Virus record (IMG/VR): IMGVR_UViG_3300042907_001080
Coordinates: 124,001-188,000 of that record
Reading direction: 5' to 3' (one strand)
Length of the DNA stretch: 64,000 nt
The translations under genes and the position numbers were made by a program. The notes beneath the pieces were generated by a model. That model was not told the DNA's origin. It was given only the letters and a program-made list of their open reading frames with translations, and made no database searches. Shown in pieces: positions 11,040 to 57,308 of the stretch. How positions within the stretch are numbered: the first letter of the stretch is position 1; each line of letters starts with the position of its first letter.

Positions 11040-11052
11040 TAGTATTTGAATA

Positions 11053-11060
11053 GATAAATA
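11053..11060 (+). promoter_or_regulatory. Late promoter-like GATAAATA
   Basis: Intergenic, upstream of a tail fibre gene. Confidence 0.6.
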
Positions 11061-11087
11061 TAAAACATAGCAGAGGTTCTTACTAAC

Positions 11088-33213: not shown

Positions 33214-33653
33214 AGATTATCTTTCTTCACTGTTTTAATATCAATTACGCCTGTGTTTACAGGACCGCCGAAATCGCCATCGACTACTACATTGGCACAC
33301 AGTTCACGGAACCAACGATCTATAATTTCTTCGTCTTTGTCTCCGTCCTCACCATATCCCTCTTGCTTTAATTTTAACACAAAAAGGTCGTTCCAGTCAA
33401 GCTCAAAAAAGCCATTACGAACATTATCTTTGTTGACATGTGTTTCGATTACGCCTACCCACGGTTCTTTTTTACGTGTTGCACGTTCTTTTGGAGATAA
33501 TTTGGCCTGTGCCTCTGCTTCTGTAGCACGTTCGGCAGCTTCAGTGGCTGCTTTGGCTGTTTCAGAGGCTTGTGCTGCAATGCCTATTGATCGTTCTGCT
33601 TCTGCTCTGATCTTGTCAATACCAAATAATTTTTCAATCCATTTATTCATCAT
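33210..33653 (-). CDS. Hypothetical phage protein
   Basis: 147 aa, ATGA overlaps at both ends. Confidence 0.65.
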   Translation of the reverse strand: MMNKWIEKLFGIDKIRAEAERSIGIAAQASETAKAATEAAERATEAEAQAKLSPKERATRKKEPWVGVIETHVNKDNVRNGFFELDWNDLFVLKLKQEGYGEDGDKDEEIIDRWFRELCANVVVDGDFGGPVNTGVIDIKTVKKDNL

Positions 33654-34504
33654 GTTCCCCATTCATTTTTAAACAATGGCACCTGCAATCTGTCTGAATA
33701 TCTCAGTCCATGTTTCATTGCCAGTTCTGCTACTCTGCGGTTATTTAGTGTGTATACACTTTCAACCCCGCCCACAGGCATGAGATAAACATTACCAGTG
33801 AAACCTTCTGCACGATAGATATCCACAGCTTCTAGAGCTTCTTCTGCATCACCTTCAGTGGCCACTACTAATTTGAGATATACATGACCAGCTTCTTGAT
33901 ATTCACAGACTATGTCTGGGCGTATAGCTTCACTAGGCTGTTCTCCTGAACAACTGAGTTTGGCACTGACCGAGAATGTAACTTCTCTACTGGCAAAAGG
34001 AGGATTCTGTGCCCATTCTTGTAGATATTTTTTAAACTCCGGAGTTAGCTTTTGAGTACCGTTGGTTTCAAAAGTAATTTCTTTAAGACCTGTCATACTC
34101 AGATGATTCAACAGATCCGGATAAGCACGTTGCCAACCTAACAACGGTTCACCGCCAGTGATAACCAAGTGTTCATCTTCCCAACGCTTGTAAGGTAATA
34201 TTTCCATGATGCGTTCTGCAATCGCATCAGTTGTTAGCATGGGCGAAAGATCTTTGAATCTAGGATCCCAGCTGGCATAGCTATCACAACCTGTGCTTAC
34301 TAATGGTAAGTCTTGATATTTAAAAAACTTCTTAATATCGGCCGCAATAAAATCACGCTCCTTGCTTTGTTCACCACGTGACATACCAAAGCCGTCACAA
34401 GTAAAGTTACATCCAAACGTGCGTAAGAACACACTAGGGACACCCATATATCGGCCTTCGCCTTGTATGCTGTAAAAAAGTTCTGCTATTTTTATTTTGC
34501 TCAT
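33650..34504 (-). CDS. queE: 7-carboxy-7-deazaguanine synthase (radical SAM)
   Basis: 'ELFYSIQGEG...G.PSVFLRTFGCN', 'GCDS', 'VITGGEPLL', 'FETNGT', 'SAKL', 'YLMP', 'RLQV.L'; lies near folE, queD-like and dpdA. Confidence 0.9.
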   Translation of the reverse strand: MSKIKIAELFYSIQGEGRYMGVPSVFLRTFGCNFTCDGFGMSRGEQSKERDFIAADIKKFFKYQDLPLVSTGCDSYASWDPRFKDLSPMLTTDAIAERIMEILPYKRWEDEHLVITGGEPLLGWQRAYPDLLNHLSMTGLKEITFETNGTQKLTPEFKKYLQEWAQNPPFASREVTFSVSAKLSCSGEQPSEAIRPDIVCEYQEAGHVYLKLVVATEGDAEEALEAVDIYRAEGFTGNVYLMPVGGVESVYTLNNRRVAELAMKHGLRYSDRLQVPLFKNEWGT

Positions 34505-35067: not shown

Positions 35068-35445
35068 TCATTTTTTATAATTACCTTTTTCTGGAATAAC
35101 ATGTCTGACACCGCCTGTGGGGTCTTCCATGTCACCTTTGCGTCGAGGAATCAAATGAACATGTGGATACGGCACAGTCTGTCCAGCAGCTTCGCCCCAA
35201 TTAAGGCCAATATTGAATCCATCCCACTCACCATTTTTAACCTTTGCCTGCCCTACTCTCAGAGCATCAGCAAAACAATCTTCAATAACTCCCACAGCTG
35301 AATATTTAGGCACAAACAACAAGTGACCGTCTGTTACAGGATACTTGTCTTTAAAAACAACCACATGAAAGTCGTCTTGTACAACATCGTTCCATGGTGC
35401 CTGCCCTGCATCACGTGCATCGTCTAACGAATAATGTAAGTTCAT
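35068..35445 (-). CDS. HIT family nucleotide hydrolase
   Basis: 'DKYPVTDGHLLFVPK', 'GFNIGLNWGEAAGQTVPYPHVHLIPRRKGD'. Confidence 0.9.
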   Translation of the reverse strand: MNLHYSLDDARDAGQAPWNDVVQDDFHVVVFKDKYPVTDGHLLFVPKYSAVGVIEDCFADALRVGQAKVKNGEWDGFNIGLNWGEAAGQTVPYPHVHLIPRRKGDMEDPTGGVRHVIPEKGNYKK

Positions 35446-35669
35446 CGTTTATATTCCTTTCTTTCTGTAGGTAGGTCATCTTCTCGTACAACAAACTCAC
35501 GGCCGCCTAGACTGCCTGCAAATGCTTTAGTGCGTTCCATATAAACTAATCGTAGTTTAAGAGTTTGAAATGCAACATCTAAAAATGCCTTGGGCTTATA
35601 ACCTAGAACATGCATATCAAAATCTTTACCTGCGTCAGTGCAATGAACTTTAATCTTAGAATCGATCAT
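35442..35669 (-). CDS. Hypothetical protein
   Basis: 75 aa, ATGA overlaps. Confidence 0.55.
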   Translation of the reverse strand: MIDSKIKVHCTDAGKDFDMHVLGYKPKAFLDVAFQTLKLRLVYMERTKAFAGSLGGREFVVREDDLPTERKEYKR

Positions 35670-36205
35670 TTTGTCCACCAATCTTCCCAAGGAAAATCAA
35701 TCCATACATCCTTCTCTGCCTTGTTAACTTCCATGCCAACGAAATCCATCTTAACATTGCACTTGCTGGCGAGATTATCTACTAACACAGCAAATTTAAC
35801 ATTGTTATTCCACACTTCTTCCCAGGCTGGATCATCTGGAAAGCAACCACTTGGCCAATCTTTCATGATCCAGTTAAGTGTGGTGCCTTGATCGTTGATA
35901 TCATCTACAATTAAAATGTTTTTAAAAGCAGTATCGCTATCAACTGCACGATCCTTGGACAACGGTCCTAGAGCATCTTCAGCCATCCATAAATTACTCT
36001 CCGGACCAATCTCACTATCTCGTAGACTTACATTGAGAGTATGTAACGGAATATTAAAATATTGACTGATCATAACAGCAGGAATCAATCCCCCTCGAGT
36101 AATTCCTACAATATAATCGGGCCTCCACGTTCCTATAGCAAGCTCTCTACAAATCTTGCCGACTAGTCCGGTTACTTCATGCTGGTTGATTTTGAGTTTG
36201 TTCAT
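35666..36205 (-). CDS. Type I phosphoribosyltransferase (Gpt/Hpt-like purine PRTase)
   Basis: 'VGITRGGLIPA', PRPP loop 'ILIVDDINDQGTT', C-terminal 'WIDFPWE'. Confidence 0.85.
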   Translation of the reverse strand: MNKLKINQHEVTGLVGKICRELAIGTWRPDYIVGITRGGLIPAVMISQYFNIPLHTLNVSLRDSEIGPESNLWMAEDALGPLSKDRAVDSDTAFKNILIVDDINDQGTTLNWIMKDWPSGCFPDDPAWEEVWNNNVKFAVLVDNLASKCNVKMDFVGMEVNKAEKDVWIDFPWEDWWTK

Positions 36206-36644
36206 TTCTATCCTTGAGATATTGTTCGTGTTGTATCCATTTGTTGTTGACTAAAAATCCCCATTCACGTTTATGCGGGCCAGGCATGAATAGGGTCCAA
36301 GCAGTTATTCCAGGTTGAAGTTCGATGCGATGATAGCTATTAGAACCACAAATACGGAAGTGACCAGGACCCCGCCAATGCTTGGTCTCTCCAATCATTT
36401 GGCCATTTTCGAAATTAGGAGTATATTCATAGTATCCACCTTTTAGTATCAGTGTAGCATAGGGCCACGGATGATCATGAACATCGTCAGGATCACCTTT
36501 GAGGAATTTATGTAAAAATACGTTGAATGGAAAACGATCTCTTTCTTTCAAGAAGAGATAATACCGTTCGAGATACGGTTCGTTATTAACACGATCATAA
36601 ATGATACGCTTGCGGCCCAGTCGTTCAAGCAGTTTCAAAAACAT
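36177..36644 (-). CDS. Cupin-fold protein
   Basis: 'HDHPW....IL.GGY.E' and 'YHRIEL' metal-binding cupin motifs. Confidence 0.75.
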   Translation of the reverse strand: MFLKLLERLGRKRIIYDRVNNEPYLERYYLFLKERDRFPFNVFLHKFLKGDPDDVHDHPWPYATLILKGGYYEYTPNFENGQMIGETKHWRGPGHFRICGSNSYHRIELQPGITAWTLFMPGPHKREWGFLVNNKWIQHEQYLKDRNEQTQNQPA

Positions 36645-37044
36645 TATTAACTTCTTCCTTGAGATATCTTATCAGTTCTTTATCTGTGGGCGATACACTA
36701 TAATTGTTCTTGTAAAAAATCTCATAGCTGTCGCTGCCGTATTTTCCAATGCCATATAACATTGTAGCATCATTTCCGTCCCAAGTCAAATAGTCTTGAC
36801 TCATTCTAATCAATCGAGTATAACGAACATTAACCATTCCGAGTGGTTGGATTATGCTTTTGACAAACTCTTCGTCTGCTTGTAGCAATGCCAGTGCTGT
36901 AGGAAACCAATATAGAAATTCTGGCAGAGTGGTCTTCACAGCTTTGCGACCAGTTTGATTTAACATAATTACCCCAACAAAATGCTGCCAAGCATTGTCA
37001 ACTTGTTGTTGCACCATTAGATCGTCACGTAGAGGTTTAATCAT
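36625..37044 (-). CDS. MBD4-like HhH-GPD DNA glycosylase
   Basis: 'W...V..IMLNQT', 'FPT', 'IQPLGM', HhH 'LYGIGKYGSDSYEIF' and catalytic-Asp region 'PTDKEL..YL', paralleling the MBD4 glycosylase domain. Confidence 0.8.
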   Translation of the reverse strand: MIKPLRDDLMVQQQVDNAWQHFVGVIMLNQTGRKAVKTTLPEFLYWFPTALALLQADEEFVKSIIQPLGMVNVRYTRLIRMSQDYLTWDGNDATMLYGIGKYGSDSYEIFYKNNYSVSPTDKELIRYLKEEVNNVFETA

Positions 37045-38118: not shown

Positions 38119-38231
38119 TATATTTCCTTAATAAAGTATTTTGATGCAGGGTATTGCACCTGCAACCACTCTAACAAGCCCGCTTCAACTGGTAAGCGAA
38201 CGCTATCAAACTTGTTAGTAATGTATCTCAT
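38118..38231 (-). CDS. Microprotein (37 aa), absent from the ORF track
   Basis: MRYITNKFDSVRLPVEAGLLEWLQVQYPASKYFIKEI; ATGA overlap with the folE stop and TAATG overlap downstream. Confidence 0.55.
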   Translation of the reverse strand: MRYITNKFDSVRLPVEAGLLEWLQVQYPASKYFIKEI

Positions 38232-38974
38232 CGTGGCGAAAATTCTTGCTGCATTTTAATATTGTCAAAGAATTCTTTCTTTGTTCCTGGATCATCTTTA
38301 AATGCACCTTTGAGTACAGTGGTCTGTGTTAGACTCGAATGCGCCATAATGCCACGATTCTCACAGCAACCGTGAGTGGCTTGTATGTATACTCCGATGT
38401 TTTCACTATCTGTAGCTCGACTTATTTCTCTTGCAATATCATTGCAGAGTTCTTCCTGGAGAGTGCCACGCCTAGCGCACCACTGAGCAATACGAGTATA
38501 CTTGCTAAGGCCAATAAGTTTGTTGGCAGCAATGATACCAATATAAGCCACCCCAGATACAGGCTGGTGATGATGACTACACATACTACGCAATTCACTT
38601 CTAACAACCAACATTCCTTCATATCTATCCTCACTATCATTCGGAAACGCTGTTGCATCTGGAGCAGGGTCGTATCTACCTGACATGATTTCATTAAAAT
38701 ACATTTTAGCAAGTCTACGTGCTGTGCCTTTACTGTTGGGATCATTTTCACGATCAATAAGCAAACTGTCTAGCACTTGTTCAAATGCAGGAGTTGCTTC
38801 GTCAATTAATTTTTCTAAGTCGCCGTCATGCAGATAATCACTGATGTTGTCACCGGCCCAGAAACGCTTGCCTTCACGTTTCATCTTAAAACGAATGTGA
38901 TCACCTAGATATGCTTCTTTATATCCGCCATCGCCTGCCATTGCGTCCAGGCCTGTTTCTGTTTTATTTGTCAA
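38228..38974 (-). CDS. folE: GTP cyclohydrolase I
   Basis: 'TARRLAKMY', 'SMCSHH', 'IGLSKY.RI', 'LQEEL', 'ATHGC...RG'; TTG start with SD GGAG. Confidence 0.93.
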   Translation of the reverse strand: MTNKTETGLDAMAGDGGYKEAYLGDHIRFKMKREGKRFWAGDNISDYLHDGDLEKLIDEATPAFEQVLDSLLIDRENDPNSKGTARRLAKMYFNEIMSGRYDPAPDATAFPNDSEDRYEGMLVVRSELRSMCSHHHQPVSGVAYIGIIAANKLIGLSKYTRIAQWCARRGTLQEELCNDIAREISRATDSENIGVYIQATHGCCENRGIMAHSSLTQTTVLKGAFKDDPGTKKEFFDNIKMQQEFSPR

Positions 38975-39013: not shown

Positions 39014-40078
39014 TTATTTTAACATCTCTAATAGTTTATTACAACTAAAAAAGTTTTCTTGTAGTATAGCTACCTGTTTATTTAGGCTAGGCAGTCGAGT
39101 TTCGTAATTATCCATATGCTGGATTATTTCTCTACAAATATCTGGACGATATACAGTATATGCATCGTAGCTCTCAGTCCATTTGCTAGGATACTTAAAT
39201 GTATCTAAAGCCATTTCACTATAGCTGAGTCTATCAGGAACCATAGGAATGGCACCTACAATAGCACCTTCATACCAACTGATGCCTAGGGTTTCTTGCA
39301 GGTTTGCACTAAACACCAATTTGGCTTCGCCTAGCAAATTATGATATTCGTTTTTTGTTAGTTGTTGATCTTGACAGACGACAAATTCATATTGCGGTAA
39401 GTGTTCTTTCAAGTCACGAAAGATTTCAACCTGTTTCTCTGGAGCGATACGATGCGGGAACAAGATAAGATCACGTTTAGTCATGTTTTTATACATTGTT
39501 AACGTGTCCTCCATATACTCCATAGGCCAACCTGTGCGCACAATCTTAGTATCATATAGTTTTTTTGCTGGAGTAAATCCTAACAAATTTTCACAAAACA
39601 TGTCAATATGAAACTGTGTAGCAAAGTAGTTGTGATCAAACGCATGATAGAAACTTTGTTCAGCATTTCTAACCCAGGGTTTATTTCCTACAAGGCGTCC
39701 TAAGAAGTCTTGCGGATCATATGAGCCAGCATGCCAAAGACCATGTGTAGTTACTGGAATTCCCAGTAGCTCACTCATATACTTTAAATTTATGATACCA
39801 GGATGCCAAGCATCAGTAAAGATAAAGTGATCGCCGGGATGAATGGATCCGTTACAAAATAACCTACCCATTTGTTCAATTTGACTAGCCTTGTAGATAT
39901 TCGTGCCGCCAAAGTTGAGAAATGCTCCAGGAGTGGTAGCACTAGGAATGTCCGTAGGACCTGATATAATGTTGACATGGTGCCCTGCTTTTTTAAGGAT
40001 TGCCGGCACGTGAGTTTTCCACTGACCCGTATATCTAGTCTCTACTGCTTCAAGATCAATGAGAAAAACTCGTGCCAT
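39014..40078 (-). CDS. GT-B (GT4-like) glycosyltransferase within the deazaguanine locus
   Basis: C-terminal 'FPHRIAPEKQ', E-x7-E motif 'QETLGISWYEG', 'VPDRLSYSE'. Confidence 0.8.
   Translation of the reverse strand: MARVFLIDLEAVETRYTGQWKTHVPAILKKAGHHVNIISGPTDIPSATTPGAFLNFGGTNIYKASQIEQMGRLFCNGSIHPGDHFIFTDAWHPGIINLKYMSELLGIPVTTHGLWHAGSYDPQDFLGRLVGNKPWVRNAEQSFYHAFDHNYFATQFHIDMFCENLLGFTPAKKLYDTKIVRTGWPMEYMEDTLTMYKNMTKRDLILFPHRIAPEKQVEIFRDLKEHLPQYEFVVCQDQQLTKNEYHNLLGEAKLVFSANLQETLGISWYEGAIVGAIPMVPDRLSYSEMALDTFKYPSKWTESYDAYTVYRPDICREIIQHMDNYETRLPSLNKQVAILQENFFSCNKLLEMLK
39016..39044 (-). promoter_or_regulatory. Possible sigma70-type promoter for folE
   Basis: TTGTAA-17 nt-TAAAAT. Confidence 0.4.
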
Positions 40079-40317: not shown

Positions 40318-40707
40318 TTAGTATTTGATGAATGAACCATTTTCTCCGTCTTCGGAGACCTCAATCCAAATCTCGCGACCTGGATACTTTTTGCTAATGA
40401 CGTCATATAAGTCGCCTGACATCATTTCACAACTCTTATAATCTAAACTTAGTGTAGCATCTTTGTAGAGATTTAGCAACCATCGTTTAAACTGAATAAA
40501 CTCAATATCACGATCATCGTGTGTAACGCCAATCCAAACTTTGAAGTGAAAGATGTGACGATGCGGATAACCTAGAAAACTTACATCATATTCATCACCT
40601 GTAGCAAGTGCTGGGTCTGTAAGTGCAGCTGGATATTTGTGCATACCTTCTTTCTGAAAGGTAACCCAAATCATTTTGTTAGGTCTAACGTCTTGTCGAA
40701 TGTTCAT
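40318..40707 (-). CDS. queD: QueD/PTPS-like T-fold protein (probable 6-carboxytetrahydropterin synthase)
   Basis: 'EGMH', 'HRH.FHF', 'RDIEF..FK', 'SCEM', 'VSEDGENG' are consistent with the PTPS/QueD fold; context next to folE. Confidence 0.65.
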   Translation of the reverse strand: MNIRQDVRPNKMIWVTFQKEGMHKYPAALTDPALATGDEYDVSFLGYPHRHIFHFKVWIGVTHDDRDIEFIQFKRWLLNLYKDATLSLDYKSCEMMSGDLYDVISKKYPGREIWIEVSEDGENGSFIKY

Positions 40708-41078
40708 CTTAGTTGTTCCATGGTTATAATTTTAGATAATTCTTCACCGAGATCTTTATCTTCAGTGACCACATGTAGACTGTGTCGATTCTCATCGTTC
40801 TTTCGGTCATACTTGGTAGTTTCAATGATAGTACCGCCACTAGCGCCATAGACATTTAGTCGAAAACCTTGTGATGCAATGTTTGGGCCTTCGCTGTCAA
40901 CTGAAATAAGCTGATTACTGTAATCTTCTTCGTCGTTCATTAGCCAGTTGCGAATTTTTTGTTTAAATGTTAATTTCATAGGTTTCTTTTCTACTACACT
41001 TCTTGCACGATTAATTTTATTAGCACCGCGGATTCTTGGAACCTTTGTCACCGATGCTACTGCGTAGCCACCACTCAT
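40704..41078 (-). CDS. Hypothetical protein
   Basis: 124 aa, ATGA-coupled. Confidence 0.6.
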   Translation of the reverse strand: MSGGYAVASVTKVPRIRGANKINRARSVVEKKPMKLTFKQKIRNWLMNDEEDYSNQLISVDSEGPNIASQGFRLNVYGASGGTIIETTKYDRKNDENRHSLHVVTEDKDLGEELSKIITMEQLR

Positions 41079-41608
41079 TTGATAATCTCATCTTTACCAT
41101 ATTGATCCCAACTAGTAAACTTATTTCTATCTAGTAGGTCATGGAGGTTATGGCACCACACTCCGTGATTAGTTGCTTTAAAGTCTTTGTCATCAATTTT
41201 CAGCGTAGCGTTATAGCCTAGTTGATTAATATAAGGTAATTTTACACTAATCTGCGGAATAAATCTACGCTTTTCGGTAAGACCACTTTCAAGCAATCCT
41301 TCCGTTTCACGAACATCAAAGTCTAAGGTACACCAAAATTCGTCCTCTGCATCTAAGCAGACATAGATCATATCTTCCCAAGGACGCCATGTTTCTGTAT
41401 CGTTAACACCATTAGTCTTAAAACTTTGATTAGCACCAAAGTAAATATGTTTGCACCTGTTGTTACGAGCCAATTCCATAATAATATATGGATCATGCAC
41501 ACCTACAACAAACAGTGTTTTCATTCCGTAGGCAGGAGTATGTTCAATCTCTACGCCGGTGAAGAAGGTAATGCTATCAGCAACACCTGAATCGTAATTT
41601 CTTTTCAT
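41075..41608 (-). CDS. Hypothetical enzyme-like protein in the dpd locus
   Basis: 177 aa alpha/beta pattern ('FFTGVEIEHTPAYGMKTLFVVG', 'HIYFGANQSF'). Confidence 0.65.
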   Translation of the reverse strand: MKRNYDSGVADSITFFTGVEIEHTPAYGMKTLFVVGVHDPYIIMELARNNRCKHIYFGANQSFKTNGVNDTETWRPWEDMIYVCLDAEDEFWCTLDFDVRETEGLLESGLTEKRRFIPQISVKLPYINQLGYNATLKIDDKDFKATNHGVWCHNLHDLLDRNKFTSWDQYGKDEIIK

Positions 41609-41984: not shown

Positions 41985-43595
41985 TTATTCTACAACCAAA
42001 CTGTTTAATTCGTCATCGTCTGGATTGGCAAAATCAATTTCGCCTGCTTTCTTGCCATCATCGAAATCAAATAAGTTACCAAATGTGTTAGCAGCAGGAC
42101 CGCCTTGTAAACGTGAACCTTCTAGTGATTTCAAGAACTGCGCACCAGTTTCAATCATATCAAACGCTTCTGCTTTGGTTTTGGTATTGAATAGTTCTTC
42201 AACAAATGTACCGAAGTAAAGAATTTTATTTGGAACCCAATCGCTGAATTCAATTTCTTTCTTGCCTTCAATGCTCTTCATACGCCAGTCTGGAGTAAAC
42301 CTAGCACATTCAATATCCATTAACTGTTGAGCACGTTGCACCGCTTTGATATGACATTCGACATTATGCCCCATCATTAGTGCGTAACTGAAACTATCCC
42401 AACTAGTCTTGTTTGGAATCTTACCTAGCTTGTTAAGTCTCGGAACTTCGTGATAGTGTTCTGGATTCAAGTGATTAAACTTAACATCTCCGAGTTCGGC
42501 ATCTGTCTTACGAACACCGTAATTGTAATATGCAATATCGCCCATGGTCAAACGGCTTCCGAATTCACTTTCAAAAGGAAACGGAATATCAAATCGTCCT
42601 GAAAGTGCTTTATTATCAGGAGCCTTGTCCATGATCACTGACCAACGCTTGTTGGTATGTTGTGCATTTGTGTAAACAAGTCCGTGAGCAGTAGCAATGA
42701 ACGGGCTTGCACAGTCAAAACTGATTGTGAGTTCTGGATTGATGTGTTTACGGATCTGACGTTGAATTTGAGTTAGATAGCATGACCAATCTAATTGTGC
42801 TGTGCCCAAGAAGTGAATCCAGTTCTTGCCGTCTAGCATTCCTTCGTCACGCATGGTCATTAGACGTTTGAGTGTGATATCCATCTTACACATATTAGCA
42901 CCACCAAATGCCCAACCTTCTGCTTCTTTTCCTGCAAATGGTCCTTTGGGATCGCTGAACTCTACAACGCCACGATACCACTTTTCTGCAGTATCCCAAT
43001 CACCGCCTTGCAATACATTAAGCCACTTGGTAGCTCCCAACCGATTATCTAGAAAATACTTGTTATTATAACGAGTCTTTTCTAAACAGTCTTCGAATGT
43101 TTTCAATCCAGTCTTCGGACTGTGGATGTGATCACAGGCCCATGTAGGCACGTCTAACATCATTGACCAATCAGCAGTTGCTTCTAGCCATTCAAGAATC
43201 TTTTGACGTGTCTTGGTAGCTTCTGCACCTTCAAAGTTCAACCAATCAAACTTGAGAACACCTTTACCGATCTGATAACCACCGGAGTCGCCTAAAATCA
43301 TTGTTTGTCCGCGATCACGCTGTTGTATCATGGATTCTTGATCCTGTGCTTTGATAACATCAAGTTGAGCGTGTCCTGCTGAATACAGAGCATACTTATA
43401 GGTAAAGTATCCTTGATCTGGATTAAGAAAGTTCATTCCTTCAATTCCTTGATCAAAGCCTGCAGGAATACGATCCTTTGGTACAAACTCTTCTAGTCGC
43501 TGTTTTGCAACATAGGTAGAATAAAAAGAACTAATTGCCGGCAGATATACTGCATAGTCCTTTTGTAATGGTGTTAGATTAACTGGTGGTTTCAT
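41985..43595 (-). CDS. dpdA: DpdA-like DNA 7-deazaguanine transglycosylase (TGT superfamily)
   Basis: TGT motifs 'DSGGYQI', 'MMLDVP', 'LNVLQG', 'GWAFGG', 'IHFLG', 'SFDCASP'; adjacent to replication genes and near folE, queD-like and queE. Confidence 0.85.
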   Translation of the reverse strand: MKPPVNLTPLQKDYAVYLPAISSFYSTYVAKQRLEEFVPKDRIPAGFDQGIEGMNFLNPDQGYFTYKYALYSAGHAQLDVIKAQDQESMIQQRDRGQTMILGDSGGYQIGKGVLKFDWLNFEGAEATKTRQKILEWLEATADWSMMLDVPTWACDHIHSPKTGLKTFEDCLEKTRYNNKYFLDNRLGATKWLNVLQGGDWDTAEKWYRGVVEFSDPKGPFAGKEAEGWAFGGANMCKMDITLKRLMTMRDEGMLDGKNWIHFLGTAQLDWSCYLTQIQRQIRKHINPELTISFDCASPFIATAHGLVYTNAQHTNKRWSVIMDKAPDNKALSGRFDIPFPFESEFGSRLTMGDIAYYNYGVRKTDAELGDVKFNHLNPEHYHEVPRLNKLGKIPNKTSWDSFSYALMMGHNVECHIKAVQRAQQLMDIECARFTPDWRMKSIEGKKEIEFSDWVPNKILYFGTFVEELFNTKTKAEAFDMIETGAQFLKSLEGSRLQGGPAANTFGNLFDFDDGKKAGEIDFANPDDDELNSLVVE

Positions 43596-44333
43596 TTAAG
43601 CAGCCTGTGCTGGGATAATATATTTGTAAGTTGCTAGTCCGCTATCTAGAGTGATCTGAATAGCACCTTCATTGCTCAACGACATCTTAGCAGTGTTGGT
43701 ATCTGAAATCTTAAGTATGCTCAAGATCGGAGCAACTGGCCAAGTCCAACCGCGATCTAATTTGCCTGCAACATTCTGTGCAAACACAAACTCACCACCG
43801 TGTGTTGATGCATCACCGAATGTAAATTTAAGATTACCGCCTTCAGTTTTAGCAAGGAATGTGGGATGCTCTGAGTTAGCACCTGCTTGAAAGTTAAAAC
43901 GAATCACAGAAGTCACTGATGGTTCGATTTCAACATCCCACTTAACACCACGAAACTTCACAGTCTTCATCTTTTCATTGATGATTTCTTGATTCATGAA
44001 GCGATAGTCGTTCTTGAAGTCGCCGTCTTTGTTTTCAAAGTGTAGACCTACTGGCAAAGTTTCGCCATTGCGTTCTGCTGTGGTGATACTGATCTTTGCA
44101 CCTTCTTTGTATTCTGCACCTTCCAACAGATATTTCAACTTGTTCAGTTGCGGCATGCCAAACACACCAATCATATCTGGATACGGATTAGCAGTTTCTG
44201 CTTCCATGATCACTGAACGGTCATCTGCCATTGAGTTAATAGTTGTGCCTTTGTCTGTGCCTGTGACTTTAACTGTGGTCAAGAAGCCGAGGTTCTGTGT
44301 GTGGCTAACGATGTCTTGTAAAATATCTTTCAT
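43596..44333 (-). CDS. Putative DNA sliding clamp (gp45/PCNA-like)
   Basis: 245 aa two-domain beta-alpha pattern ending 'GAIQITLDSGLATYKYIIPA'; directly downstream of the polymerase; clamp loader is in the window. Confidence 0.7.
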   Translation of the reverse strand: MKDILQDIVSHTQNLGFLTTVKVTGTDKGTTINSMADDRSVIMEAETANPYPDMIGVFGMPQLNKLKYLLEGAEYKEGAKISITTAERNGETLPVGLHFENKDGDFKNDYRFMNQEIINEKMKTVKFRGVKWDVEIEPSVTSVIRFNFQAGANSEHPTFLAKTEGGNLKFTFGDASTHGGEFVFAQNVAGKLDRGWTWPVAPILSILKISDTNTAKMSLSNEGAIQITLDSGLATYKYIIPAQAA

Positions 44334-44356
44334 TAAGAATTCTCCTGTATATTAAG

Positions 44357-44385
44357 ATTATATTTAGATCTTGAGAAAAAATCAA
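44357..44385 (-). promoter_or_regulatory. Sigma70-type promoter with overlapping late TAAATA, upstream of clamp-dpdA
   Basis: TTGATT-17 nt-TATAAT; TAAATA at 44361-44366. Confidence 0.6.
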
Positions 44386-44393
44386 CCTAGAAA

Positions 44394-47063
44394 TCACTCA
44401 AAATCAAACAGTTTGTTAAATGTATTATCCGACCTTGTTGAACTGATGTCCCATTCCAAAACACCAATAAGGTTTCCTAACTTCTCATCTATCACAGTGG
44501 TTTCCATTTCTGCATCGTTGAAAGGAAGATCCTTGAACCACTGCGGCAATCTCAGTTCATCCACAGGATAGGCCACGGAAGTATGCCCCATAGGATTGTC
44601 TTTGATCTTGCATACAATTACTTTCATGCCATCTACAATCTGCATGGAGTATTTGTCATCCATCATACGCCGGAGAGTGTTCCAATTCAATGAAGCTCTA
44701 ACATGCCCGGGCATGTTAGTCTTGCCTGCTTTTTTTTCTTTGGCAGCGTATTCTGTGATATTGTTGGCTCGCTTAGGCGAGCCCTTTTCCCAACCCGGTC
44801 GAGTTTTAAATTCTGTGCGAAAATCAGTGATATATTGCAGGATCTCTTCTTTGGTCACACCAGTTAGTGTCTTAGTCAGCACCTCACTCAAGAAGTCTTG
44901 TATAACAACCGGGGTATCTGAACGCTTGAGATCAAGCCCCATCGCTTTAATTTTTCCTGGTTTGCCTTCTGTGTCTGCTCGTTTGCCTTCTTTGTCGTAG
45001 TAGAGAACTGCGTATCGCTTTTTGGTGATGAACAGTCCTTTGCTTGCAACAATTTCGCGACCTGCTTTGATGACCTCGGCTCTGGTTCGAGGGACATGAA
45101 ATGCGTCCTGCATGAATTTGACAAATGTGCCATTGACCGTATCTCCTATGGTATCGTAAAGTTCGACCACTGATTCTCTGTTCCAGGGAATCAGTCCCTT
45201 CTCAATGTCTTTTTTCAAGGTAGTATACGCTGAAAAATAACAAGAGTCTGTGTCACCGTAGATTACTGCTCGACCGATGTGATCATACTCTCCAGTGATA
45301 ATTTCGTTTACTTTTGATGCCATGTGTTTGGCAATTTGTCTTCCGGTGAGAGTTGTGGACTGTCCAATTCTGTTATCAAAGAATCTACAGCCTGGATTTA
45401 AAATTGCACCATACAGACTGTTTAGTAGAATCTTCTTGACCAACTGTCGCTTGTCCCAGTATTCTTCTTCAATCTTGTTGCCGGCCTGGATACATTCTCG
45501 CAGTTTGGCCTGCATTTCTTTACGTTCTTTATACCAACGTGCTAGCAGTCCGGATATAACACCCTCAGTTTCATATGTGAATATAGTGCCGTTGGCTGAG
45601 ATCATCCAAGGTTGATTGCTGTCAAATATAAGATCATAGGCCTGAGCCGCACTTAGCGTATCCGAGCCGCCACCTTCCCAATCGACAGTGACTTCACGAC
45701 CCACTTCTCGATTCATCACAGCGGAATATTCAAGACTACCAAATATGCCTTCCCAAGCGGACGCAAATGATTTTCCTTTTGACATTTCTGCTGCAATAAA
45801 ATCCTTGGTCCCATCCTGTCTCAACTGACCTACGATGGTTTCAGGACCCATATTCAAAGCCCGAATAGCACTAGGATACAGTGAGTTAATATCTAGCGAG
45901 CCGATCCACTCATGTATACCTTTCTTGGGATATGCAACGTAGGCACCAGCAGCTTGAGTGTCTCCGTGCTCTTCCATTTTTTTGCGATTAGGAACTATCA
46001 TACCTCTGCGATGAGCTTCGTTGATGATAGCTTGTTCAGTCACAGCCACTGCACCCATAGTAGTTGCTAACAGCACTGTGTTTTCGTGTGCAATTGTATT
46101 GGCTAAGTCAATAAATTTCAGTTTCTTATCTAGATCATCTAACAGTTTACAATCGTTGATATTGTATTCAACGAATGTTTTAAAATCGTTGTTGTATAAT
46201 TGATCCAATGTGCCTTCATACTGAGTCTTTCTCTGACCTAGTTCATATTCGGCAATAGCATCTAATCGATAGGTGTGACGTTCTTCATAGGTATACTTGC
46301 GATAAAGTTCAAGACTGTCTATATGCACACGGCCAATGAAGTCATATGTAGTGGCAGTTTTACCGAACTTTTCATATTCTCGTTTCTTAGGCAAACAATT
46401 CCATAGACAAAAACGTTTGGTATCTTCTTTACTGAGAACCTTGGTAACACGATTAACAGTATATGGAATATCAAAGCCTTCCGAGTTCCAACCACTCAGC
46501 ACATCAGCATCTTGTATGAGATCCAAGAATGTGTTTAGCATGTCTGCTTCGTTGTCAAACAGCATGGTATTGGGAAATTCTTCAACCTGCTTGGTGGCTT
46601 CTGCCATGCTGAGTGTTTTGGGAGGTATGGCTAGACACACCATGGTCTCCATCCATTGTAGGTAGACAGCAATCGCAGTAATTGGCATGAACGCATCATC
46701 TGGTGATGCATAGCCACGTTCTGGATCAAAGTCTACCTCAATATCGAAAAACGCTACATTTAGCTTAGGTGCATCTTGATTGAGATAATTGTCTTCTAAA
46801 CAACGATATATGGGATTAATATCGCTTTCGTGAAGTTTTTTGTTTGAATGTATGGCAAGTTCTTTGCGATGTTCTTTGACATTCTTTGAACTTACACGGC
46901 TAAGAGGTTCACGCTTAATGGATTGGAACTTGCCTTTGGGGTCGTTGTAATAGAATATATGTCTGGCAGGATAGTCTTTGAAATGCCTCTGCCCTTTGTC
47001 GTCACGCTCAACAACACGTATCATGTCATCGTCGCGATCGTAGTATGCGTCCACGAAACTCAT
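44394..47063 (-). CDS. Family B DNA polymerase (gp43-like)
   Basis: ExoI 'FFDIEV', ExoII 'GWNSEGFDIPY', ExoIII 'YNINDC'; polymerase motifs 'LDINSLYPS', 'KILLNSLYG', 'YGDTDS', 'KKRYA'. Confidence 0.97.
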   Translation of the reverse strand: MSFVDAYYDRDDDMIRVVERDDKGQRHFKDYPARHIFYYNDPKGKFQSIKREPLSRVSSKNVKEHRKELAIHSNKKLHESDINPIYRCLEDNYLNQDAPKLNVAFFDIEVDFDPERGYASPDDAFMPITAIAVYLQWMETMVCLAIPPKTLSMAEATKQVEEFPNTMLFDNEADMLNTFLDLIQDADVLSGWNSEGFDIPYTVNRVTKVLSKEDTKRFCLWNCLPKKREYEKFGKTATTYDFIGRVHIDSLELYRKYTYEERHTYRLDAIAEYELGQRKTQYEGTLDQLYNNDFKTFVEYNINDCKLLDDLDKKLKFIDLANTIAHENTVLLATTMGAVAVTEQAIINEAHRRGMIVPNRKKMEEHGDTQAAGAYVAYPKKGIHEWIGSLDINSLYPSAIRALNMGPETIVGQLRQDGTKDFIAAEMSKGKSFASAWEGIFGSLEYSAVMNREVGREVTVDWEGGGSDTLSAAQAYDLIFDSNQPWMISANGTIFTYETEGVISGLLARWYKERKEMQAKLRECIQAGNKIEEEYWDKRQLVKKILLNSLYGAILNPGCRFFDNRIGQSTTLTGRQIAKHMASKVNEIITGEYDHIGRAVIYGDTDSCYFSAYTTLKKDIEKGLIPWNRESVVELYDTIGDTVNGTFVKFMQDAFHVPRTRAEVIKAGREIVASKGLFITKKRYAVLYYDKEGKRADTEGKPGKIKAMGLDLKRSDTPVVIQDFLSEVLTKTLTGVTKEEILQYITDFRTEFKTRPGWEKGSPKRANNITEYAAKEKKAGKTNMPGHVRASLNWNTLRRMMDDKYSMQIVDGMKVIVCKIKDNPMGHTSVAYPVDELRLPQWFKDLPFNDAEMETTVIDEKLGNLIGVLEWDISSTRSDNTFNKLFDFE

Positions 47064-53465: not shown

Positions 53466-54149
53466 CTATTTATCGCATACTATAAAGTTATATACTCTGC
53501 CCACAACGTCAGCACCACGCAGTTTCATCATTAGCAGTGTGGATTCATCTTCAACTAATACATATCTACGGTCCCAATTCCAATCTGTGGTCAAGAACCA
53601 ACGTTCGATCGCAGGAGTGCAGGTTATTCTAGGGGCTTGTGATTTCAGCCAGGCTAGATATTTCTGTTTGCCTTCACGATCTTTGGCCATTTTATGCGGC
53701 ATGAGATACACGCGATAGCGATATCTGTCCTTGGGCAGTTTACTCACTGTGATACAGTTCTGTGAATTATTCAACACATCGAGATTGTTGATGTTGGGTT
53801 CAAATCTATGCACCAAGTAATCTTGGCTAGCTAGGCTGAGTTTTTCGTAGAACTCAGGATCGTTGGTATAAACATCTAGTCTATTCCTTTCAACCCTTGT
53901 TGCGTATGCATCTTCGTCGTAGGAACTAAAAAAGTCACAAACGCTGCTTATTATTTCTTTATTAGCTGTGGCCCTACGCCAATTATCATAATGATATCCG
54001 CTGTCACTGTTAGAATTTTCTAACCAGTCCTTGATATTTGAAATAGGCTGTGTGCGAAATATCACACAGCCGTCTATTTGCAGGCTGATTTTATATAACC
54101 ATTTGTTGTAGAACTTACGACTGGTCGATTTGGTTTTCAGTTGTAGCAT
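53466..54149 (-). CDS. Hypothetical protein
   Basis: About 227 aa overlapping the clpA 3' end. Confidence 0.6.
   Translation of the reverse strand: MLQLKTKSTSRKFYNKWLYKISLQIDGCVIFRTQPISNIKDWLENSNSDSGYHYDNWRRATANKEIISSVCDFFSSYDEDAYATRVERNRLDVYTNDPEFYEKLSLASQDYLVHRFEPNINNLDVLNNSQNCITVSKLPKDRYRYRVYLMPHKMAKDREGKQKYLAWLKSQAPRITCTPAIERWFLTTDWNWDRRYVLVEDESTLLMMKLRGADVVGRVYNFIVCDK
53467..53474 (-). promoter_or_regulatory. Late promoter-like GATAAATA
   Basis: 4 nt before the ATG at 53462. Confidence 0.55.
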
Positions 54150-56472
54150 CTTGTTCTTGTGTATTTGCTGCTTCAGCAATTCGTTGCGCCCTAAGAGCTT
54201 TTCTTTCTTCCTTGGTCAACGGTTTTGGTATCTCAACCACTGTGAAATCCAATTTGTCATCGATGATATCCACGGTAACTCTTCCACCATTTACTAGATC
54301 ACCGAACAGCACTCTGCGACTTAGTGGGCTCTTGATTTCATTGTCGATGATTCGTGCCAATGGTCTAGCACCCATCTTCTTGTCGTAGCCTCGATCTGCT
54401 AGCCAACGTGTGGCCTTGGCGTTAACCACGATCTCAATGCCTTTGTCTTTTAATTGACTGTTGAGATCAGCCACAAACTTCTTGACGATCTGGATCACAG
54501 TATCGCCACTGAGTTTAGAGAACTTGATTACAGCATCTAGTCTATTGCGGAATTCTGGGCTGAAATGTTTCTTAATGGCTCTGTCATCTTCGCCATCACG
54601 TTCTAGTTCGCCAAATCCGATGGTGTTGAGTTCGTTGTCAGCGGCTCCGAGATTTGACGTCATAATCAAAATAGTATTACGACCGTCTGCTACTTTGCCA
54701 TTGGATCCGGTGATAAAACCATTGTCCATGAACGCTAGAAGAATATTCATAACATCCGGATGAGCTTTTTCAACTTCGTCTAATAGTAAGATAGCGTTGG
54801 GTGTTTCTTGTAGTTTGGTGATCAACATACCAGCATTATCTTCGTAACCAACATAACCCGGAGGAGCACCAATTAATCTTGCTACTGAATGCTTTTCCTG
54901 ATACTCACCCATGTCAAATCGGATTAACTGCATACCCATTTTATCTGATAATTGTTTAGCAGTTTCGGTTTTGCCACAGCCTGTGGGTCCCAAGAATAGG
55001 AATGACCCAATAGGCTTGTTAGGTGCCTTCATGCCAGCCTGACTCACAAAGATTTTATCTAACAATGTATCTACAGCATTATCTTGTCCGTAGACCACAC
55101 CCTTCATCTGAGTGTCTAACTCTGAAAGATTTTTGCTTTCTTTTTGCGCCACGGTTTCTAATGGCATGTTAATCATCTTACTGAGTTCGTAGGTGACCTG
55201 TTCGATGTCTACAATCTGTGTAACACCTTCCATGCCCTCATCATCTTTGAGCTTATATCTAGCACAGGCACAGTCAATAATATCAATAGCCTTGTCAGGC
55301 AGTTTTTTATCACTCATATATTTGACACTGAGCTTAACTGCTTGTTCGATGGCTGCATCGGATATTTTTACATTGTGATGTTGCTCGTAGTATTTCTTTA
55401 GACCTTTAAGGATCTTCACAGCCATTTCTGGTGTAGGCTCTTCAACGGTCACACGTTGGAATCGACGCATCAGCGCACGATCGCCTTCGAAGTGCTTGCG
55501 ATATTCTTCCCATGTGGTAGATGCTATCAGCTTGAGAACACCTTTGGTAAGTATGGGTTTCAACATATTGGCCATGTCGTTTGAACTGCCATTTGCAGCA
55601 CCCGCACCGTTCATCATGTGTGCTTCGTCGATGAACAAGATGATCTTGCCTTTTTTCTCTAGTGCAGCCAACACCGCTTTAACTCGTTCTTCGAAATCAC
55701 CACGATACTTTGATCCTGCTAGGAGAGCACTGATGTCCAAAGTATAGACTTGATGGTCCTTGATAAATTTAGGAACCTTGCCTTCGTGAATCTTACGAGC
55801 AATGCCCTCAGCAATAGCAGTTTTACCCACTCCGGGATCACCTACCATTAACACGTTGGCCTTGTTTCGACGTGCCAATACCAATTGTATTTTTTCTATT
55901 TCGTCATCACGGCCTATTACAGGATCAAGTTTTCGCTGTTTGGCCTTGAGACTGAGATTGGTACAAAACTGATTCAATATTCGATCTATTTGATTTGAGT
56001 TCACTATTCTTGTTTCAACTTCGGCGTCTTCGGTAACCTGCACATTTTCTTGGAAATACTTTACAAACTTTTCTTTAGTCACCCCGGCCTTGGTAAGAAA
56101 GTAGTAACCGAAACTGTTTTTCTCTGACAGCACACTGATAATGATATCTGCTATCTCCATGCGCTGTCTACCGCTAAACAACACCTGTGTAAAGCAACGA
56201 TTCAACACACGTTCTACGCTGTTGGTCTTTTTAGGTTTTGCGTTGGCATTGGTAGTTTTAATATCATTGAGATTGTTTTTTAAGTAGTGTTCTATATTTG
56301 TTTTAACAAATTTAGCATCAGCACCAAAACTTTCTAATAGTTTATAAGAATCCTCATCATCCATAATGCCATAGATAATATGTTCAATGGTTATGTACTC
56401 GTGACTCAAAGTCTTGGCCATCTCTATAGATTTTTCAAAAATTTCTTGTAGGCTCTTACTGGGTTCAATCAT
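54115..56472 (-). CDS. clpA: ATP-dependent Clp protease ATPase subunit ClpA
   Basis: N-domain 'HEYITIEH'; Walker A 'GDPGVGKT' and 'GPTGCGKT'; Walker B 'LFIDEAH' and 'LLDEVEKAH'; pore loops 'KYRG' and 'GYVG'; IGF loop 'TIGFG'; no ClpB middle domain. Confidence 0.92.
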   Translation of the reverse strand: MIEPSKSLQEIFEKSIEMAKTLSHEYITIEHIIYGIMDDEDSYKLLESFGADAKFVKTNIEHYLKNNLNDIKTTNANAKPKKTNSVERVLNRCFTQVLFSGRQRMEIADIIISVLSEKNSFGYYFLTKAGVTKEKFVKYFQENVQVTEDAEVETRIVNSNQIDRILNQFCTNLSLKAKQRKLDPVIGRDDEIEKIQLVLARRNKANVLMVGDPGVGKTAIAEGIARKIHEGKVPKFIKDHQVYTLDISALLAGSKYRGDFEERVKAVLAALEKKGKIILFIDEAHMMNGAGAANGSSNDMANMLKPILTKGVLKLIASTTWEEYRKHFEGDRALMRRFQRVTVEEPTPEMAVKILKGLKKYYEQHHNVKISDAAIEQAVKLSVKYMSDKKLPDKAIDIIDCACARYKLKDDEGMEGVTQIVDIEQVTYELSKMINMPLETVAQKESKNLSELDTQMKGVVYGQDNAVDTLLDKIFVSQAGMKAPNKPIGSFLFLGPTGCGKTETAKQLSDKMGMQLIRFDMGEYQEKHSVARLIGAPPGYVGYEDNAGMLITKLQETPNAILLLDEVEKAHPDVMNILLAFMDNGFITGSNGKVADGRNTILIMTSNLGAADNELNTIGFGELERDGEDDRAIKKHFSPEFRNRLDAVIKFSKLSGDTVIQIVKKFVADLNSQLKDKGIEIVVNAKATRWLADRGYDKKMGARPLARIIDNEIKSPLSRRVLFGDLVNGGRVTVDIIDDKLDFTVVEIPKPLTKEERKALRAQRIAEAANTQEQDATTENQIDQS

Positions 56473-57308
56473 TACATATTTCCTTGTTTGATCTGTTGTA
56501 TTAGGTCGATTTGCTCGGGTTGTAGAATTTTTGGGATTGATACTTTAATTTTTATCAATAAGTTACCTCGCTGCCTTGTGCGCATATTGGGCAAACCTTC
56601 ACCTCTGCAACTCATTACTGTATCCGGTTGTGTACCGGGTGGCAAGTTCATTGATAATGTTTTACGATCTAGTGTTTGTATTTCTATACTAGCTCCCAGC
56701 AATGCATCCCATACACTTACTTCTCGTTCTACGATCAACGATGTGCCTTCTCGTCGGTATATGGGGTGTTCACGCACTATGACATTAACCAATAAATCTC
56801 CTGGTTTGAGACTGGGTATTGAATCATCACCCATGCCTTCGTATCTAATTTGTTGTCCATGCTCTATGCCCGGAGGAATCTGAATGTTGATCATCTTATT
56901 CTTACCAGGGATTGAAACTTCAGCGGTAAAGTCTTTGCCGTTAAGCACATCTTCTAAGGTAATTTCTACATTGATGTTTAGGGATCTATTTCTGCGTTGA
57001 GGCTGGCGACCAAATCCGCCAAAGCCAAAGTTACCGAAAATGTCATGCATATTACCAGTGTCGAAATGAAACTCAAACGGATTTTGACCTCTACCCATGC
57101 CCGGCTGTGCATTAGGATCACCGCCAAGGTCTATGATTTGTTTTTTCTGGGGGTCGCTAAGAAATTCGTAAGCCTGTGATATTTCTTTGAACTTCTTTTC
57201 ATCACCGCCTCGATCTGGGTGATATTTCATGGCCATGCTTCGGTATGCCTTTTTTATTTCGGCATCACTGGCGTTTCGTTTTAGTCCTAGGGTAGCGTAG
57301 TAATCCAT
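56472..57308 (-). CDS. Class B J-domain co-chaperone (DnaJ/CbpA-like, no zinc finger)
   Basis: J domain with HPD ('KYHPDRGG'), G/F linker, DnaJ_C repeats; no CxxCxGxG. Confidence 0.9.
   Translation of the reverse strand: MDYYATLGLKRNASDAEIKKAYRSMAMKYHPDRGGDEKKFKEISQAYEFLSDPQKKQIIDLGGDPNAQPGMGRGQNPFEFHFDTGNMHDIFGNFGFGGFGRQPQRRNRSLNINVEITLEDVLNGKDFTAEVSIPGKNKMINIQIPPGIEHGQQIRYEGMGDDSIPSLKPGDLLVNVIVREHPIYRREGTSLIVEREVSVWDALLGASIEIQTLDRKTLSMNLPPGTQPDTVMSCRGEGLPNMRTRQRGNLLIKIKVSIPKILQPEQIDLIQQIKQGNM

Follow-up and report, generated by a model that had tools for sequence, protein, structure and literature searches.

Why would a putative DNA-modifying enzyme of a jumbo phage carry in its tail the same short peptide as the phage's replicative DNA polymerase? 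We asked this of a 64,000-nt stretch (the window), positions 124,001 to 188,000 of IMG/VR record IMGVR_UViG_3300042907_001080, in which a polymerase gene, a putative sliding clamp gene and a gene for a DpdA-like protein run contiguously. A first-pass annotation made from the sequence alone had pointed out that the two outer proteins share a tail peptide, and had proposed that this DpdA rides the clamp and exchanges G for deazaguanine on nascent phage DNA, protecting it at once from restriction and sparing host DNA. The shared peptide is indeed there, with the open reading frames as the annotation described them. The proposed interpretation is only partly supported, in that clamp binding is inferred from sequence alone and there is no evidence here for the immediate protection or for the sparing of host DNA.

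The polymerase ends ...SDNTFNKLFDFE followed by the stop codon, and its last residues are NTFNKLFDFE. The DpdA-like protein, encoded by the next-but-one gene, has NTFGNLFDFD in its tail; in contrast to the polymerase copy and to the T4 polymerase peptide, which are terminal, this motif is internal, with 24 residues following the 10-mer. The stop codon of the clamp-like gene between them abuts the DpdA start codon. Residues 500-520 of the DpdA-like protein have pLDDT below 50 in the AlphaFold2 (AF2) model, indicating that the motif, with its hydrophobic/aromatic core F..LF.F, lies in a predicted disordered stretch.

Table 1. Positions in the window of the features discussed in the text, with database and sequence evidence.
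Positions	Strand	Feature	Length	Evidence
44394-47063	-	T4/RB69-type family-B DNA polymerase	889 aa	Pfam DNA_pol_B 1.5e-34 and DNA_pol_B_exo1 4e-20; PHROG 262 at 2e-197; RB69 gp43 (1clq) at 9.5e-63
44397-44426	-	C-terminal peptide NTFNKLFDFE of the polymerase, putative clamp-docking tail	10 aa	Read directly from the sequence
43596-44333	-	PCNA/gp45-type sliding clamp (predicted fold), two domains	245 aa	PHROG 12062; homologue in phage PAC2 annotated PCNA
41985-43595	-	Divergent TGT-superfamily protein (predicted fold), DpdA-like	536 aa	No Pfam, NCBIfam or PHROG hit; see text
42060-42089	-	Tail motif NTFGNLFDFD shared with the polymerase (residues 503-512)	10 aa	Read directly from the sequence
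42057-42095	-	Full 13-mer given by the first-pass annotation, AANTFGNLFDFDD	13 aa	Read directly from the sequence
41988-42059	-	Acidic end of the tail with a second conserved motif (DDDELNSLVVE; short helix 528-535)		Recurs as DDxLxxLE in the related loci, in PA5oct and in the entries labelled P0121, P0123 and P0132
41075-41608	-	Conserved neighbour	177 aa	Homologue beside the ACP17 DpdA candidate, E 7e-13; no Pfam hit
40318-40707	-	DpdL-like protein (predicted CDG decarboxylase, QueD paralogue)		LGYPHRHIF, fitting the published DpdL signature LxxxHRHxF; homologues in phiST, ACP17, PA5oct and Phosso
39014-40078	-	Conserved neighbour, glycosyltransferase-like by a relative's annotation	354 aa	50% identical to the Phosso protein annotated 'glycosyltransferase'; also next to DpdL in ACP17, L087 and BUCT-ZZ01
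38228-38974	-	GTP cyclohydrolase I (FolE)		Pfam PF01227 at 1e-38
33650-34504	-	Radical SAM enzyme, QueE-like		Pfam Radical_SAM 1.5e-7 and Fer4_12; syntenic PA5oct gene annotated 7-carboxy-7-deazaguanine synthase
63009-63932	-	AAA+ clamp-loader subunit (gp44/RFC-like)		Pfam AAA 7e-16, DNA_pol3_delta2 5.5e-13 and Rad17

We first considered whether two low-complexity tails could resemble each other by chance, since the motif is short and D, E, N, F and L are common in such tails. The two 10-mers share 7 of 10 residues, whereas a match of 7 or more occurred at a rate of 1.2e-4 in 100,000 shuffles of the DpdA protein, and among the 258 stop-to-stop ORFs of 60 aa or more in the window only this one reaches 7. 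The DNA is only 21/30 identical, with synonymous differences (AAT/AAC, CTG/TTA, TTT/TTC), indicating conservation at the peptide level and not a recent DNA copy. Together with the enrichment and co-variation described below, the shuffles refute the chance explanation for practical purposes, and we regard it as very unlikely.

The next step was the identity of the 536-aa protein. Its AF2 model (pLDDT 89.5) has the TGT-type (beta/alpha)8 barrel fold, which is followed by the disordered tail; its best 13 PDB matches in a Foldseek search are TGT or QTRT1, with Zymomonas mobilis TGT (1q2r) at E 1.6e-6, probability 1.0 and TM 0.39 by query length and 0.52 by target length. In BFVD it matches a Motura 'tRNA guanine transglycosylase' at 2e-12 and a Vibrio nt-1 protein at 3e-9. 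Profile comparison by hhalign gave 98% probability with the GR7B TGT-domain protein and 96% with the 424-aa DpdA candidate of ACP17, across the DSGG.Q, LD.P, H.LG and IS.D motifs. The catalytic aspartates of TGT are the Asp of DSGG[FY]Q and a second Asp near the barrel end; in the family the DSGG.Q motif and the Asp of ISFD are invariant, with D103, S104, G106 and D294 invariant in 44 diverse members, and these positions align with the same motifs in the GR7B and ACP17 proteins. In the window the gene sits among FolE, a QueE-like enzyme and DpdL, and its homologues are repeatedly linked to FolE, QueC, QueE, QueF or DpdL in PA5oct, Vibrio 2.275.O and L087, L089, L094 and L105 (L numbers are our labels for related loci).

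It remains possible, though unlikely, that the protein is not a DNA deazaguanine transglycosylase but a TGT-fold enzyme acting on tRNA, or a DNA glycosylase, in which case the clamp link would serve repair or another function. The window protein has no hit to the curated TGT models (Pfam PF01702, NCBIfam), only 1 of 44 family members touches PF01702 (E 0.007), and a profile search against PDB sequences found nothing. Identity to solved TGTs is only about 14%, with TM 0.39-0.53. The zinc site CxCxxC...H of canonical TGT was not found: no invariant or nearly invariant cysteine appears in two family alignments, where only H261 and H410 are conserved. An HhH-GPD glycosylase is also encoded nearby. 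Against this reading stand the consistent linkage to 7-deazaguanine synthesis genes in distant lineages and the retained DSGG.Q and second-Asp motifs. In addition, PA5oct DNA resists restriction enzymes in a pattern that its authors read as modified G (PMC12191111), which is the only, and indirect, support for base exchange in DNA. In ACP17, which is published as having a dpdA (PMC10516641), the only homologue in the DpdL cluster is the 424-aa protein.

The gene between the two motif-bearing proteins is predicted to encode a sliding clamp. Its AF2 model (pLDDT 92.3) has the two-domain clamp protomer fold, with 493 PDB matches at E <= 0.001, of which all 50 listed are PCNAs (TM 0.61-0.70 by query length); yeast PCNA (6e49_C) is matched at E 1.6e-11 and TM 0.68. 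No sequence-level hit was obtained to PDB or to T4 gp45, and its peptide pocket is therefore assumed. The gene lies next to the polymerase, and a clamp-loader ATPase is encoded in the window. The order polymerase-clamp-DpdA is kept in nearly all of 80 IMG/VR loci and in PA5oct, Vibrio 2.275.O, L087, L089, L090 and L105.

In T4 and RB69, the C-terminal hydrophobic/aromatic tail of gp43 docks on the gp45 clamp, at a site also used by the late-transcription proteins gp33 and gp55. In a MAFFT alignment of six polymerases, the window polymerase tail falls on the T4 gp43 C-terminus ...ASLDFLFG, with NTF over ASL and, after a three-column gap in both, NKLFDFE over DFLFG. In about 70 related loci the polymerase ends N[TN]FxxLF[DST]F[DE], and the DpdA motif is conserved at its position after 'RLQGGP' in most of the 80 loci. 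Among 114 distant representatives clustered at 50% identity, 29 have [LMF]F within the last six residues against 4.3 expected, an enrichment of about sevenfold. The two tails of the same phage also share lineage-specific flavours in window-type phages, PA5oct (FDSLFGW / FNSLFDV), Vibrio 2.275.O (NNTDLFDW / NNNDLFGW), ACP17 (SLDDLFE / TLDELFE), L087, L089 and L090. Permutation of the partners gave p = 3e-4 for 11 lineages and an exact p = 0.003 for 8 distant lineages scored on flanking positions only, although the lineages are few and the DpdA proteins looked up to obtain three of them were chosen for having a terminal LF. The predicted folds of the clamp and the enzyme, the presence of the motif in orthologous tails and its co-variation with the polymerase tail had been set as tests beforehand, and none of them refuted the idea.

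There are exceptions. In the 'RLRGGV' subclade the DpdA motif has decayed (TNIADTLFYEE, KSTFNQHFYEE) while the polymerase keeps NTFNKLFDFE; L105 has a clamp and a polymerase ending DDLFAF but no LF motif in the DpdA tail; L035 is a further exception; and in Phosso the cognate pair scores worst of the 11. The shared tail could also dock on a replisome partner other than the clamp, such as the gp32-like SSB, the helicase or primase, or the polymerase itself, so that DpdA would be replisome-associated but not clamp-borne. The gp32-like SSB of ACP17 ends SALFED and the SSB of BUCT-ZZ01 ends DDDFFKSLLED, both hydrophobic-Phe-acidic tails, while a DUF2493 protein in ACP17 ends NELLFE and a protein annotated gp26-like ends GLDDFFV. 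Moreover, in Phosso and L093 the DpdA gene sits next to primase and DnaB genes and not the clamp gene. We consider this alternative unlikely because the polymerase tail aligns with that of T4 gp43, whose partner is the clamp by established biochemistry, and because clamp then DpdA is the commonest gene order.

Taken together, we consider it more likely than not that the 536-aa protein is a highly divergent DpdA-type DNA transglycosylase which works with FolE, the QueE-like enzyme and DpdL and is a client of the phage's PCNA-like clamp. It most likely replaces guanine in phage DNA with a 7-deazaguanine base, probably 7-deazaguanine itself, because DpdL is present and no QueC was seen in the window. 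Clamps loaded at replication forks would recruit the enzyme through its disordered tail to new duplex and let it scan processively, so that base exchange is coupled to replication. The analysis establishes the folds, as predicted, the gene context, and the presence, conservation and co-variation of the motif, whereas the base exchange, the clamp as binding partner, the timing and the gain in efficiency are inferred. An unlikely variant is that the tail binds the clamp but acts mainly as a competitor or regulator, displacing the polymerase or keeping DpdA auto-inhibited through its acidic end. The conserved acidic segment and DDxLxxLE helix that follow the motif are lacking in the polymerase, and the two proteins would compete for the same pocket; however, a trimeric clamp offers three pockets, such that the clients need not exclude each other, and nothing in the data points to inhibition.

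As in T4, a second, unrelated protein of the same phage would reuse the peptide type of the polymerase, but here it is a predicted DNA-modifying transglycosylase and not a transcription factor. The logic is also that of eukaryotic PCNA clients acting on newly made DNA through PIP-type motifs, such as DNMT1, UNG2, FEN1 and ligase I, in which a short disordered motif recruits a DNA-modifying or DNA-processing enzyme to the clamp, so that its action is coupled to replication. There is no homology to these clients, the predicted chemistry is base exchange and not methyl transfer or excision, and the motif lacks the canonical Qxx[LIM]xx[FY][FY] pattern. With the phage subfamilies DpdA1 to DpdA4 and bacterial DpdA (Hutinet et al., NAR 2023, PMC10516641), the protein shares the predicted TGT-superfamily fold, the linkage to FolE, QueE and DpdL and the predicted insertion of a 7-deazaguanine into DNA. 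The window family differs in being missed by the Pfam TGT model and by PHROGs. It is about twice the length of phiST DpdA3 (gp042, 259 aa) and barely alignable to it, the family HMM scoring gp042 at only 6.8 bits over about 90 residues and finding nothing in the first 50 kb of CP220, which like phiST represents the DpdA3 type. That paper describes the modification as post-replicative and does not mention a clamp, and in the literature we could search no paper links DpdA or 7-deazaguanine insertion to a sliding clamp, in line with the first-pass annotation's sense of novelty.

Phage 7-deazaguanine modification ranges, without explanation so far, from under 0.1% to 100% of guanines depending on the DpdA subfamily (PMC10516641). 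The field currently describes insertion simply as post-replicative. A clamp-docking tail would offer a concrete and testable mechanism for efficiency, timing and self-targeting. The ACP17 dpdA and dpdL genes gave no dDG in E. coli, for which the authors suggested a missing factor (PMC10516641); this fits our reading, which points to the factor possibly missing from failed heterologous reconstitutions. More tentatively, and with somewhat less than even likelihood, tethering to the clamp may be what turns a DNA transglycosylase from a sparse, site-limited modifier into one that replaces nearly every guanine. In this view, each phage lineage would tune its DpdA tail to its own clamp together with the polymerase tail, giving a replication-coupled base-exchange system as a viral counterpart of PCNA-coupled maintenance methylation, which would also explain why ACP17-type DpdA was inactive when expressed without phage replication proteins.

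The analysis also identifies the likely DpdA of PA5oct-like jumbo phages, which are used in Pseudomonas phage work and are still annotated 'hypothetical' at this gene. The family is very large in metagenomes, with more than 7,400 clusters at 90% identity and 870 representatives at 50%.

The polymerase, the 245-aa protein and the 536-aa protein are encoded by three abutting ORFs, and the start codon of the 536-aa ORF abuts the stop codon of the 245-aa ORF. The polymerase ends in NTFNKLFDFE, while the 536-aa protein contains NTFGNLFDFD at residues 503-512, with 24 more residues following the motif. The two 10-mers share 7 of 10 residues. In 100,000 shuffles of the 536-aa protein a match that good occurred at a rate of 1.2e-4, and no other of the 258 ORFs in the window reaches 7. 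The coding DNA is only 21/30 identical and differs at synonymous sites, indicating that the peptide is what is conserved and that this is not a recent DNA copy. The shared peptide that the first-pass annotation had described is therefore confirmed, with the small correction that the coordinates it gave cover the 10-mer, not the 13-mer.

Coordinates of the features discussed in the text
Feature	Sequence	Coordinates	Strand	Length
Family-B DNA polymerase	Window	44394-47063	minus	889 aa
Polymerase C-terminal NTFNKLFDFE	Window	44397-44426	minus	10 aa
ORF with predicted PCNA fold	Window	43596-44333	minus	245 aa
DpdA-like ORF	Window	41985-43595	minus	536 aa
Tail motif NTFGNLFDFD of the DpdA-like protein	Window	42060-42089	minus	10 aa
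Acidic end of the DpdA-like tail (DDDELNSLVVE)	Window	41988-42059	minus	
Conserved neighbor without Pfam hit	Window	41075-41608	minus	177 aa
DpdL-like gene	Window	40318-40707	minus	
Conserved neighbor, Phosso homologue annotated as a glycosyltransferase	Window	39014-40078	minus	354 aa
FolE	Window	38228-38974		
HhH-GPD base-excision glycosylase, phosphoribosyltransferase and HIT-domain protein	Window	36625-37044, 35666-36205, 35068-35445	minus	
QueE-like radical SAM enzyme	Window	33650-34504		
ClpB/ClpA-like double AAA+ chaperone and DnaJ	Window	54115-56472 and 56472-57308	minus	
DUF2452 protein	Window	62525-63019	minus	
AAA+ clamp-loader-like gene	Window	63009-63932	minus	
Counter-example locus	L105 (metagenomic contig)	7632-11602		
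Split polymerase gene	L001 (PA5oct)	1-4831		

The polymerase is T4/RB69-like, with Pfam and PHROG hits and a match to RB69 gp43 at 9.5e-63. The 245-aa protein has no Pfam hit, and PHROG 12062, a family of unknown function, was the only useful result from Pfam, NCBIfam and PHROG scans of this protein and the 536-aa protein. Profile searches against PDB sequences were empty for both proteins. However, an alignment of 46 homologues of the 245-aa protein gave a confident predicted model (pLDDT 92.3), and all 50 listed PDB matches to that model are PCNAs, for example 6e49_C at E 1.6e-11 with TM 0.68. Comparison of the clamp family with T4 gp45 by hhalign gave a probability of only 0.5%, and single-protein locus searches with the Vibrio and PA5oct clamps found no relatives. 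In addition, the window contains an AAA+ clamp-loader-like gene with DNA_pol3_delta2 and Rad17 hits, followed by a DUF2452 protein that could be the small clamp-loader subunit.

The 536-aa protein has no Pfam, NCBIfam or PHROG hit, and neither do 43 of 44 diverse relatives scanned one by one. Its predicted model (pLDDT 89.5) matches Zymomonas TGT and human QTRT1 best (E 1.6e-6, probability 1.0), and among viral models it matches the ‘tRNA guanine transglycosylase’ of Achromobacter phage Motura and a Vibrio phage nt-1 protein. Profile comparison aligns its DSGG.Q, LD.P, H.LG and IS.D motifs with the TGT-domain protein of Vibrio phage GR7B (98% probability) and with the 424-aa DpdA candidate of Acidovorax phage ACP17 (96%). 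The GR7B protein ends in a lysine-rich tail with only an internal TLFG. D103, S104, G106 and D294 are invariant across 44 members, whereas no cysteine is conserved, so the canonical TGT zinc site seems absent. We also tried to place the protein among DpdA1 to DpdA4, but it is unlike phiST DpdA3 (gp042), a 259-aa protein that the family HMM hits only marginally, and the same HMM finds nothing in the first 50 kb of CP220.

The window comes from a jumbo phage related to Pseudomonas phage PA5oct, Sinorhizobium phage Phosso and Vibrio phage 2.275.O. A megablast of the region against phage records gave no match. Downstream of the DpdA-like gene lie the DpdL-like gene, the conserved 354-aa gene, FolE and the QueE-like radical SAM gene. 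Homologues of the 536-aa protein sit next to QueE, QueF, QueC or FolE in PA5oct, Vibrio 2.275.O and several metagenomic contigs. PA5oct DNA resists restriction enzymes in a pattern that its authors read as modified G, and they name no DpdA (PMC12191111). We therefore accept ‘DpdA-like’ as the best functional label. The DpdL-like protein, a QueD paralogue, carries LGYPHRHIF, which fits the published DpdL signature LxxxHRHxF exactly, and neither a canonical QueD signature (CxxxHGH) nor QueC was found in the 64-kb window, which predicts 7-deazaguanine itself (dDG) rather than preQ0 as the inserted base. The 354-aa protein, which is 50% identical to its Phosso homologue, travels with DpdL and DpdA in distant phages and also occurs in ACP17, in the metagenomic contig L087 and in Synechococcus phage BUCT-ZZ01. 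The 177-aa protein, which has an ACP17 homologue at E 7e-13, does the same. Neither has a Pfam hit, but their co-occurrence could mean a further decoration of the deazaguanine. An HhH-GPD base-excision glycosylase, a phosphoribosyltransferase and a HIT-domain protein lie between FolE and the QueE-like gene, and a phosphoribosyltransferase also recurs next to DpdA-like genes in the retrieved loci L089, L094 and L095 and in BUCT-ZZ01.

The family is very large, with more than 7,400 clusters at 90% identity and 870 representatives at 50% identity. In 80 IMG/VR loci the order polymerase-clamp-DpdA is nearly constant, the polymerase ends N[TN]FxxLF[DST]F[DE], and most DpdA tails have N.F..LF.[FVIL][DE] at the same place, just after a conserved RLQGGP. 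Among 114 full-length representatives, 29 have [LMF]F within the last six residues, against 4.3 expected from shuffles, as in ...NLFDFS, ...SLFEF, ...RLFDYA, ...SMFDY and ...DPDLFG. There are exceptions. In one subclade, whose tails begin with RLRGGV, the motif has decayed to forms such as TNIADTLFYEE although the polymerase tail is unchanged. In the metagenomic contig L105 the polymerase ends IDDLFAF and a clamp gene is present, but the DpdA-like tail has no LF motif, only an acidic DLLAEF segment. More distant relatives often lack the motif. A second conserved element lies at the very end of the DpdA-like tails in the window, in PA5oct and in many loci, where an acidic run is followed by a short helix of the form DDxLxxLE (DDDELNSLVVE in the window and NDEKLTELEQG in PA5oct). 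The polymerase lacks this element.

We next asked whether the DpdA tail follows the polymerase tail of the same phage, and found that it does in lineage after lineage.

Polymerase and DpdA tails compared within lineages (L087, L089 and L090 are retrieved loci)
Lineage	Polymerase tail	DpdA tail	Position
Window	NTFNKLFDFE	NTFGNLFDFD	
PA5oct	HFDSLFGW	SFNSLFDV	
Vibrio 2.275.O	NNTDLFDW	NNNDLFGW	both terminal
ACP17	SLDDLFE	TLDELFE	both terminal
L087	LDDLFDF	NNLFDFS	
L090	STFFEF	LSLFEF	
L089	NKMFTF	MKLFDFGG	

Phosso is the weak case, with DLFTF in the polymerase against EGLF in DpdA. Scoring windows anchored on the conserved Phe and permuting the partners gave p = 3e-4 for 11 lineages, and an exact p = 0.003 for 8 distant lineages scored on flanking positions only. 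The sample is small, and the DpdA proteins used to obtain three of the lineages were picked for having a terminal LF, though not for matching their polymerase. Four other distant relatives lie on contigs without a polymerase and thus gave no tail pair. No other carrier of the motif was found in the 64-kb window or in the flanks of the 80 loci.

In an alignment of six polymerases, the window tail falls on the T4 gp43 C-terminus, ...ASLDFLFG, which is the gp45-binding peptide. The 50-residue polymerase tail alone found nothing in PDB. The motif of the DpdA-like protein lies in a predicted disordered stretch, as docking peptides do, and the clamp gene sits between the two carriers. Together, these make the clamp the most economical partner. 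However, a census of the complete ACP17 genome gives a caution: while the exact LD[DE]LFE end is limited to the polymerase and the DpdA candidate, looser hydrophobic-Phe-acidic ends occur on the gp32-like SSB (SALFED), a DUF2493 protein (NELLFE) and a 253-aa protein annotated gp26-like (GLDDFFV). The cyanophage BUCT-ZZ01 shows similar ends on its ACP17-type DpdA, on a neighboring 447-aa protein (SLEDFFND) and on its SSB. A different replisome hub therefore cannot be excluded. The motif, its conservation and its agreement with the polymerase tail are read from the sequences, whereas clamp binding and base exchange in DNA by this protein are inferred. The interpretation in the first-pass annotation, that this DpdA rides the sliding clamp, is partly supported and remains the best reading available. 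We consider docking on the clamp specifically to be more likely than not, and are considerably more confident that the tail is some functional replisome-docking motif.

In this reading, the system works like the T4 polymerase/gp33/gp55 set of gp45 clients, and like eukaryotic PCNA clients that process new DNA. The enzyme is a member of the TGT/DpdA structural superfamily by its predicted fold but lies outside the curated sequence families. Both the enzyme class and the docking logic are known, but their combination has not been described before, and full-text searches found no paper linking DpdA or 7-deazaguanine insertion to a sliding clamp. The 2023 survey of phage deazaguanines (PMC10516641) calls the modification post-replicative and notes that it ranges from under 0.1% to 100% between DpdA subfamilies. 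It also reports that the ACP17 dpdA and dpdL genes gave no dDG in E. coli, and its authors suggested a missing factor. A need for the phage clamp would fit that result for ACP17, although this is speculation.

Elsewhere in the window, the phage encodes a ClpB/ClpA-like double AAA+ chaperone and a full DnaJ (J domain plus C-terminal domain) side by side. The PA5oct polymerase gene is split by a homing-endonuclease gene annotated ‘Hef-like’, and L105 shows a similar split, with an unannotated gene on the opposite strand between the two polymerase halves, while the polymerase of the window is intact.
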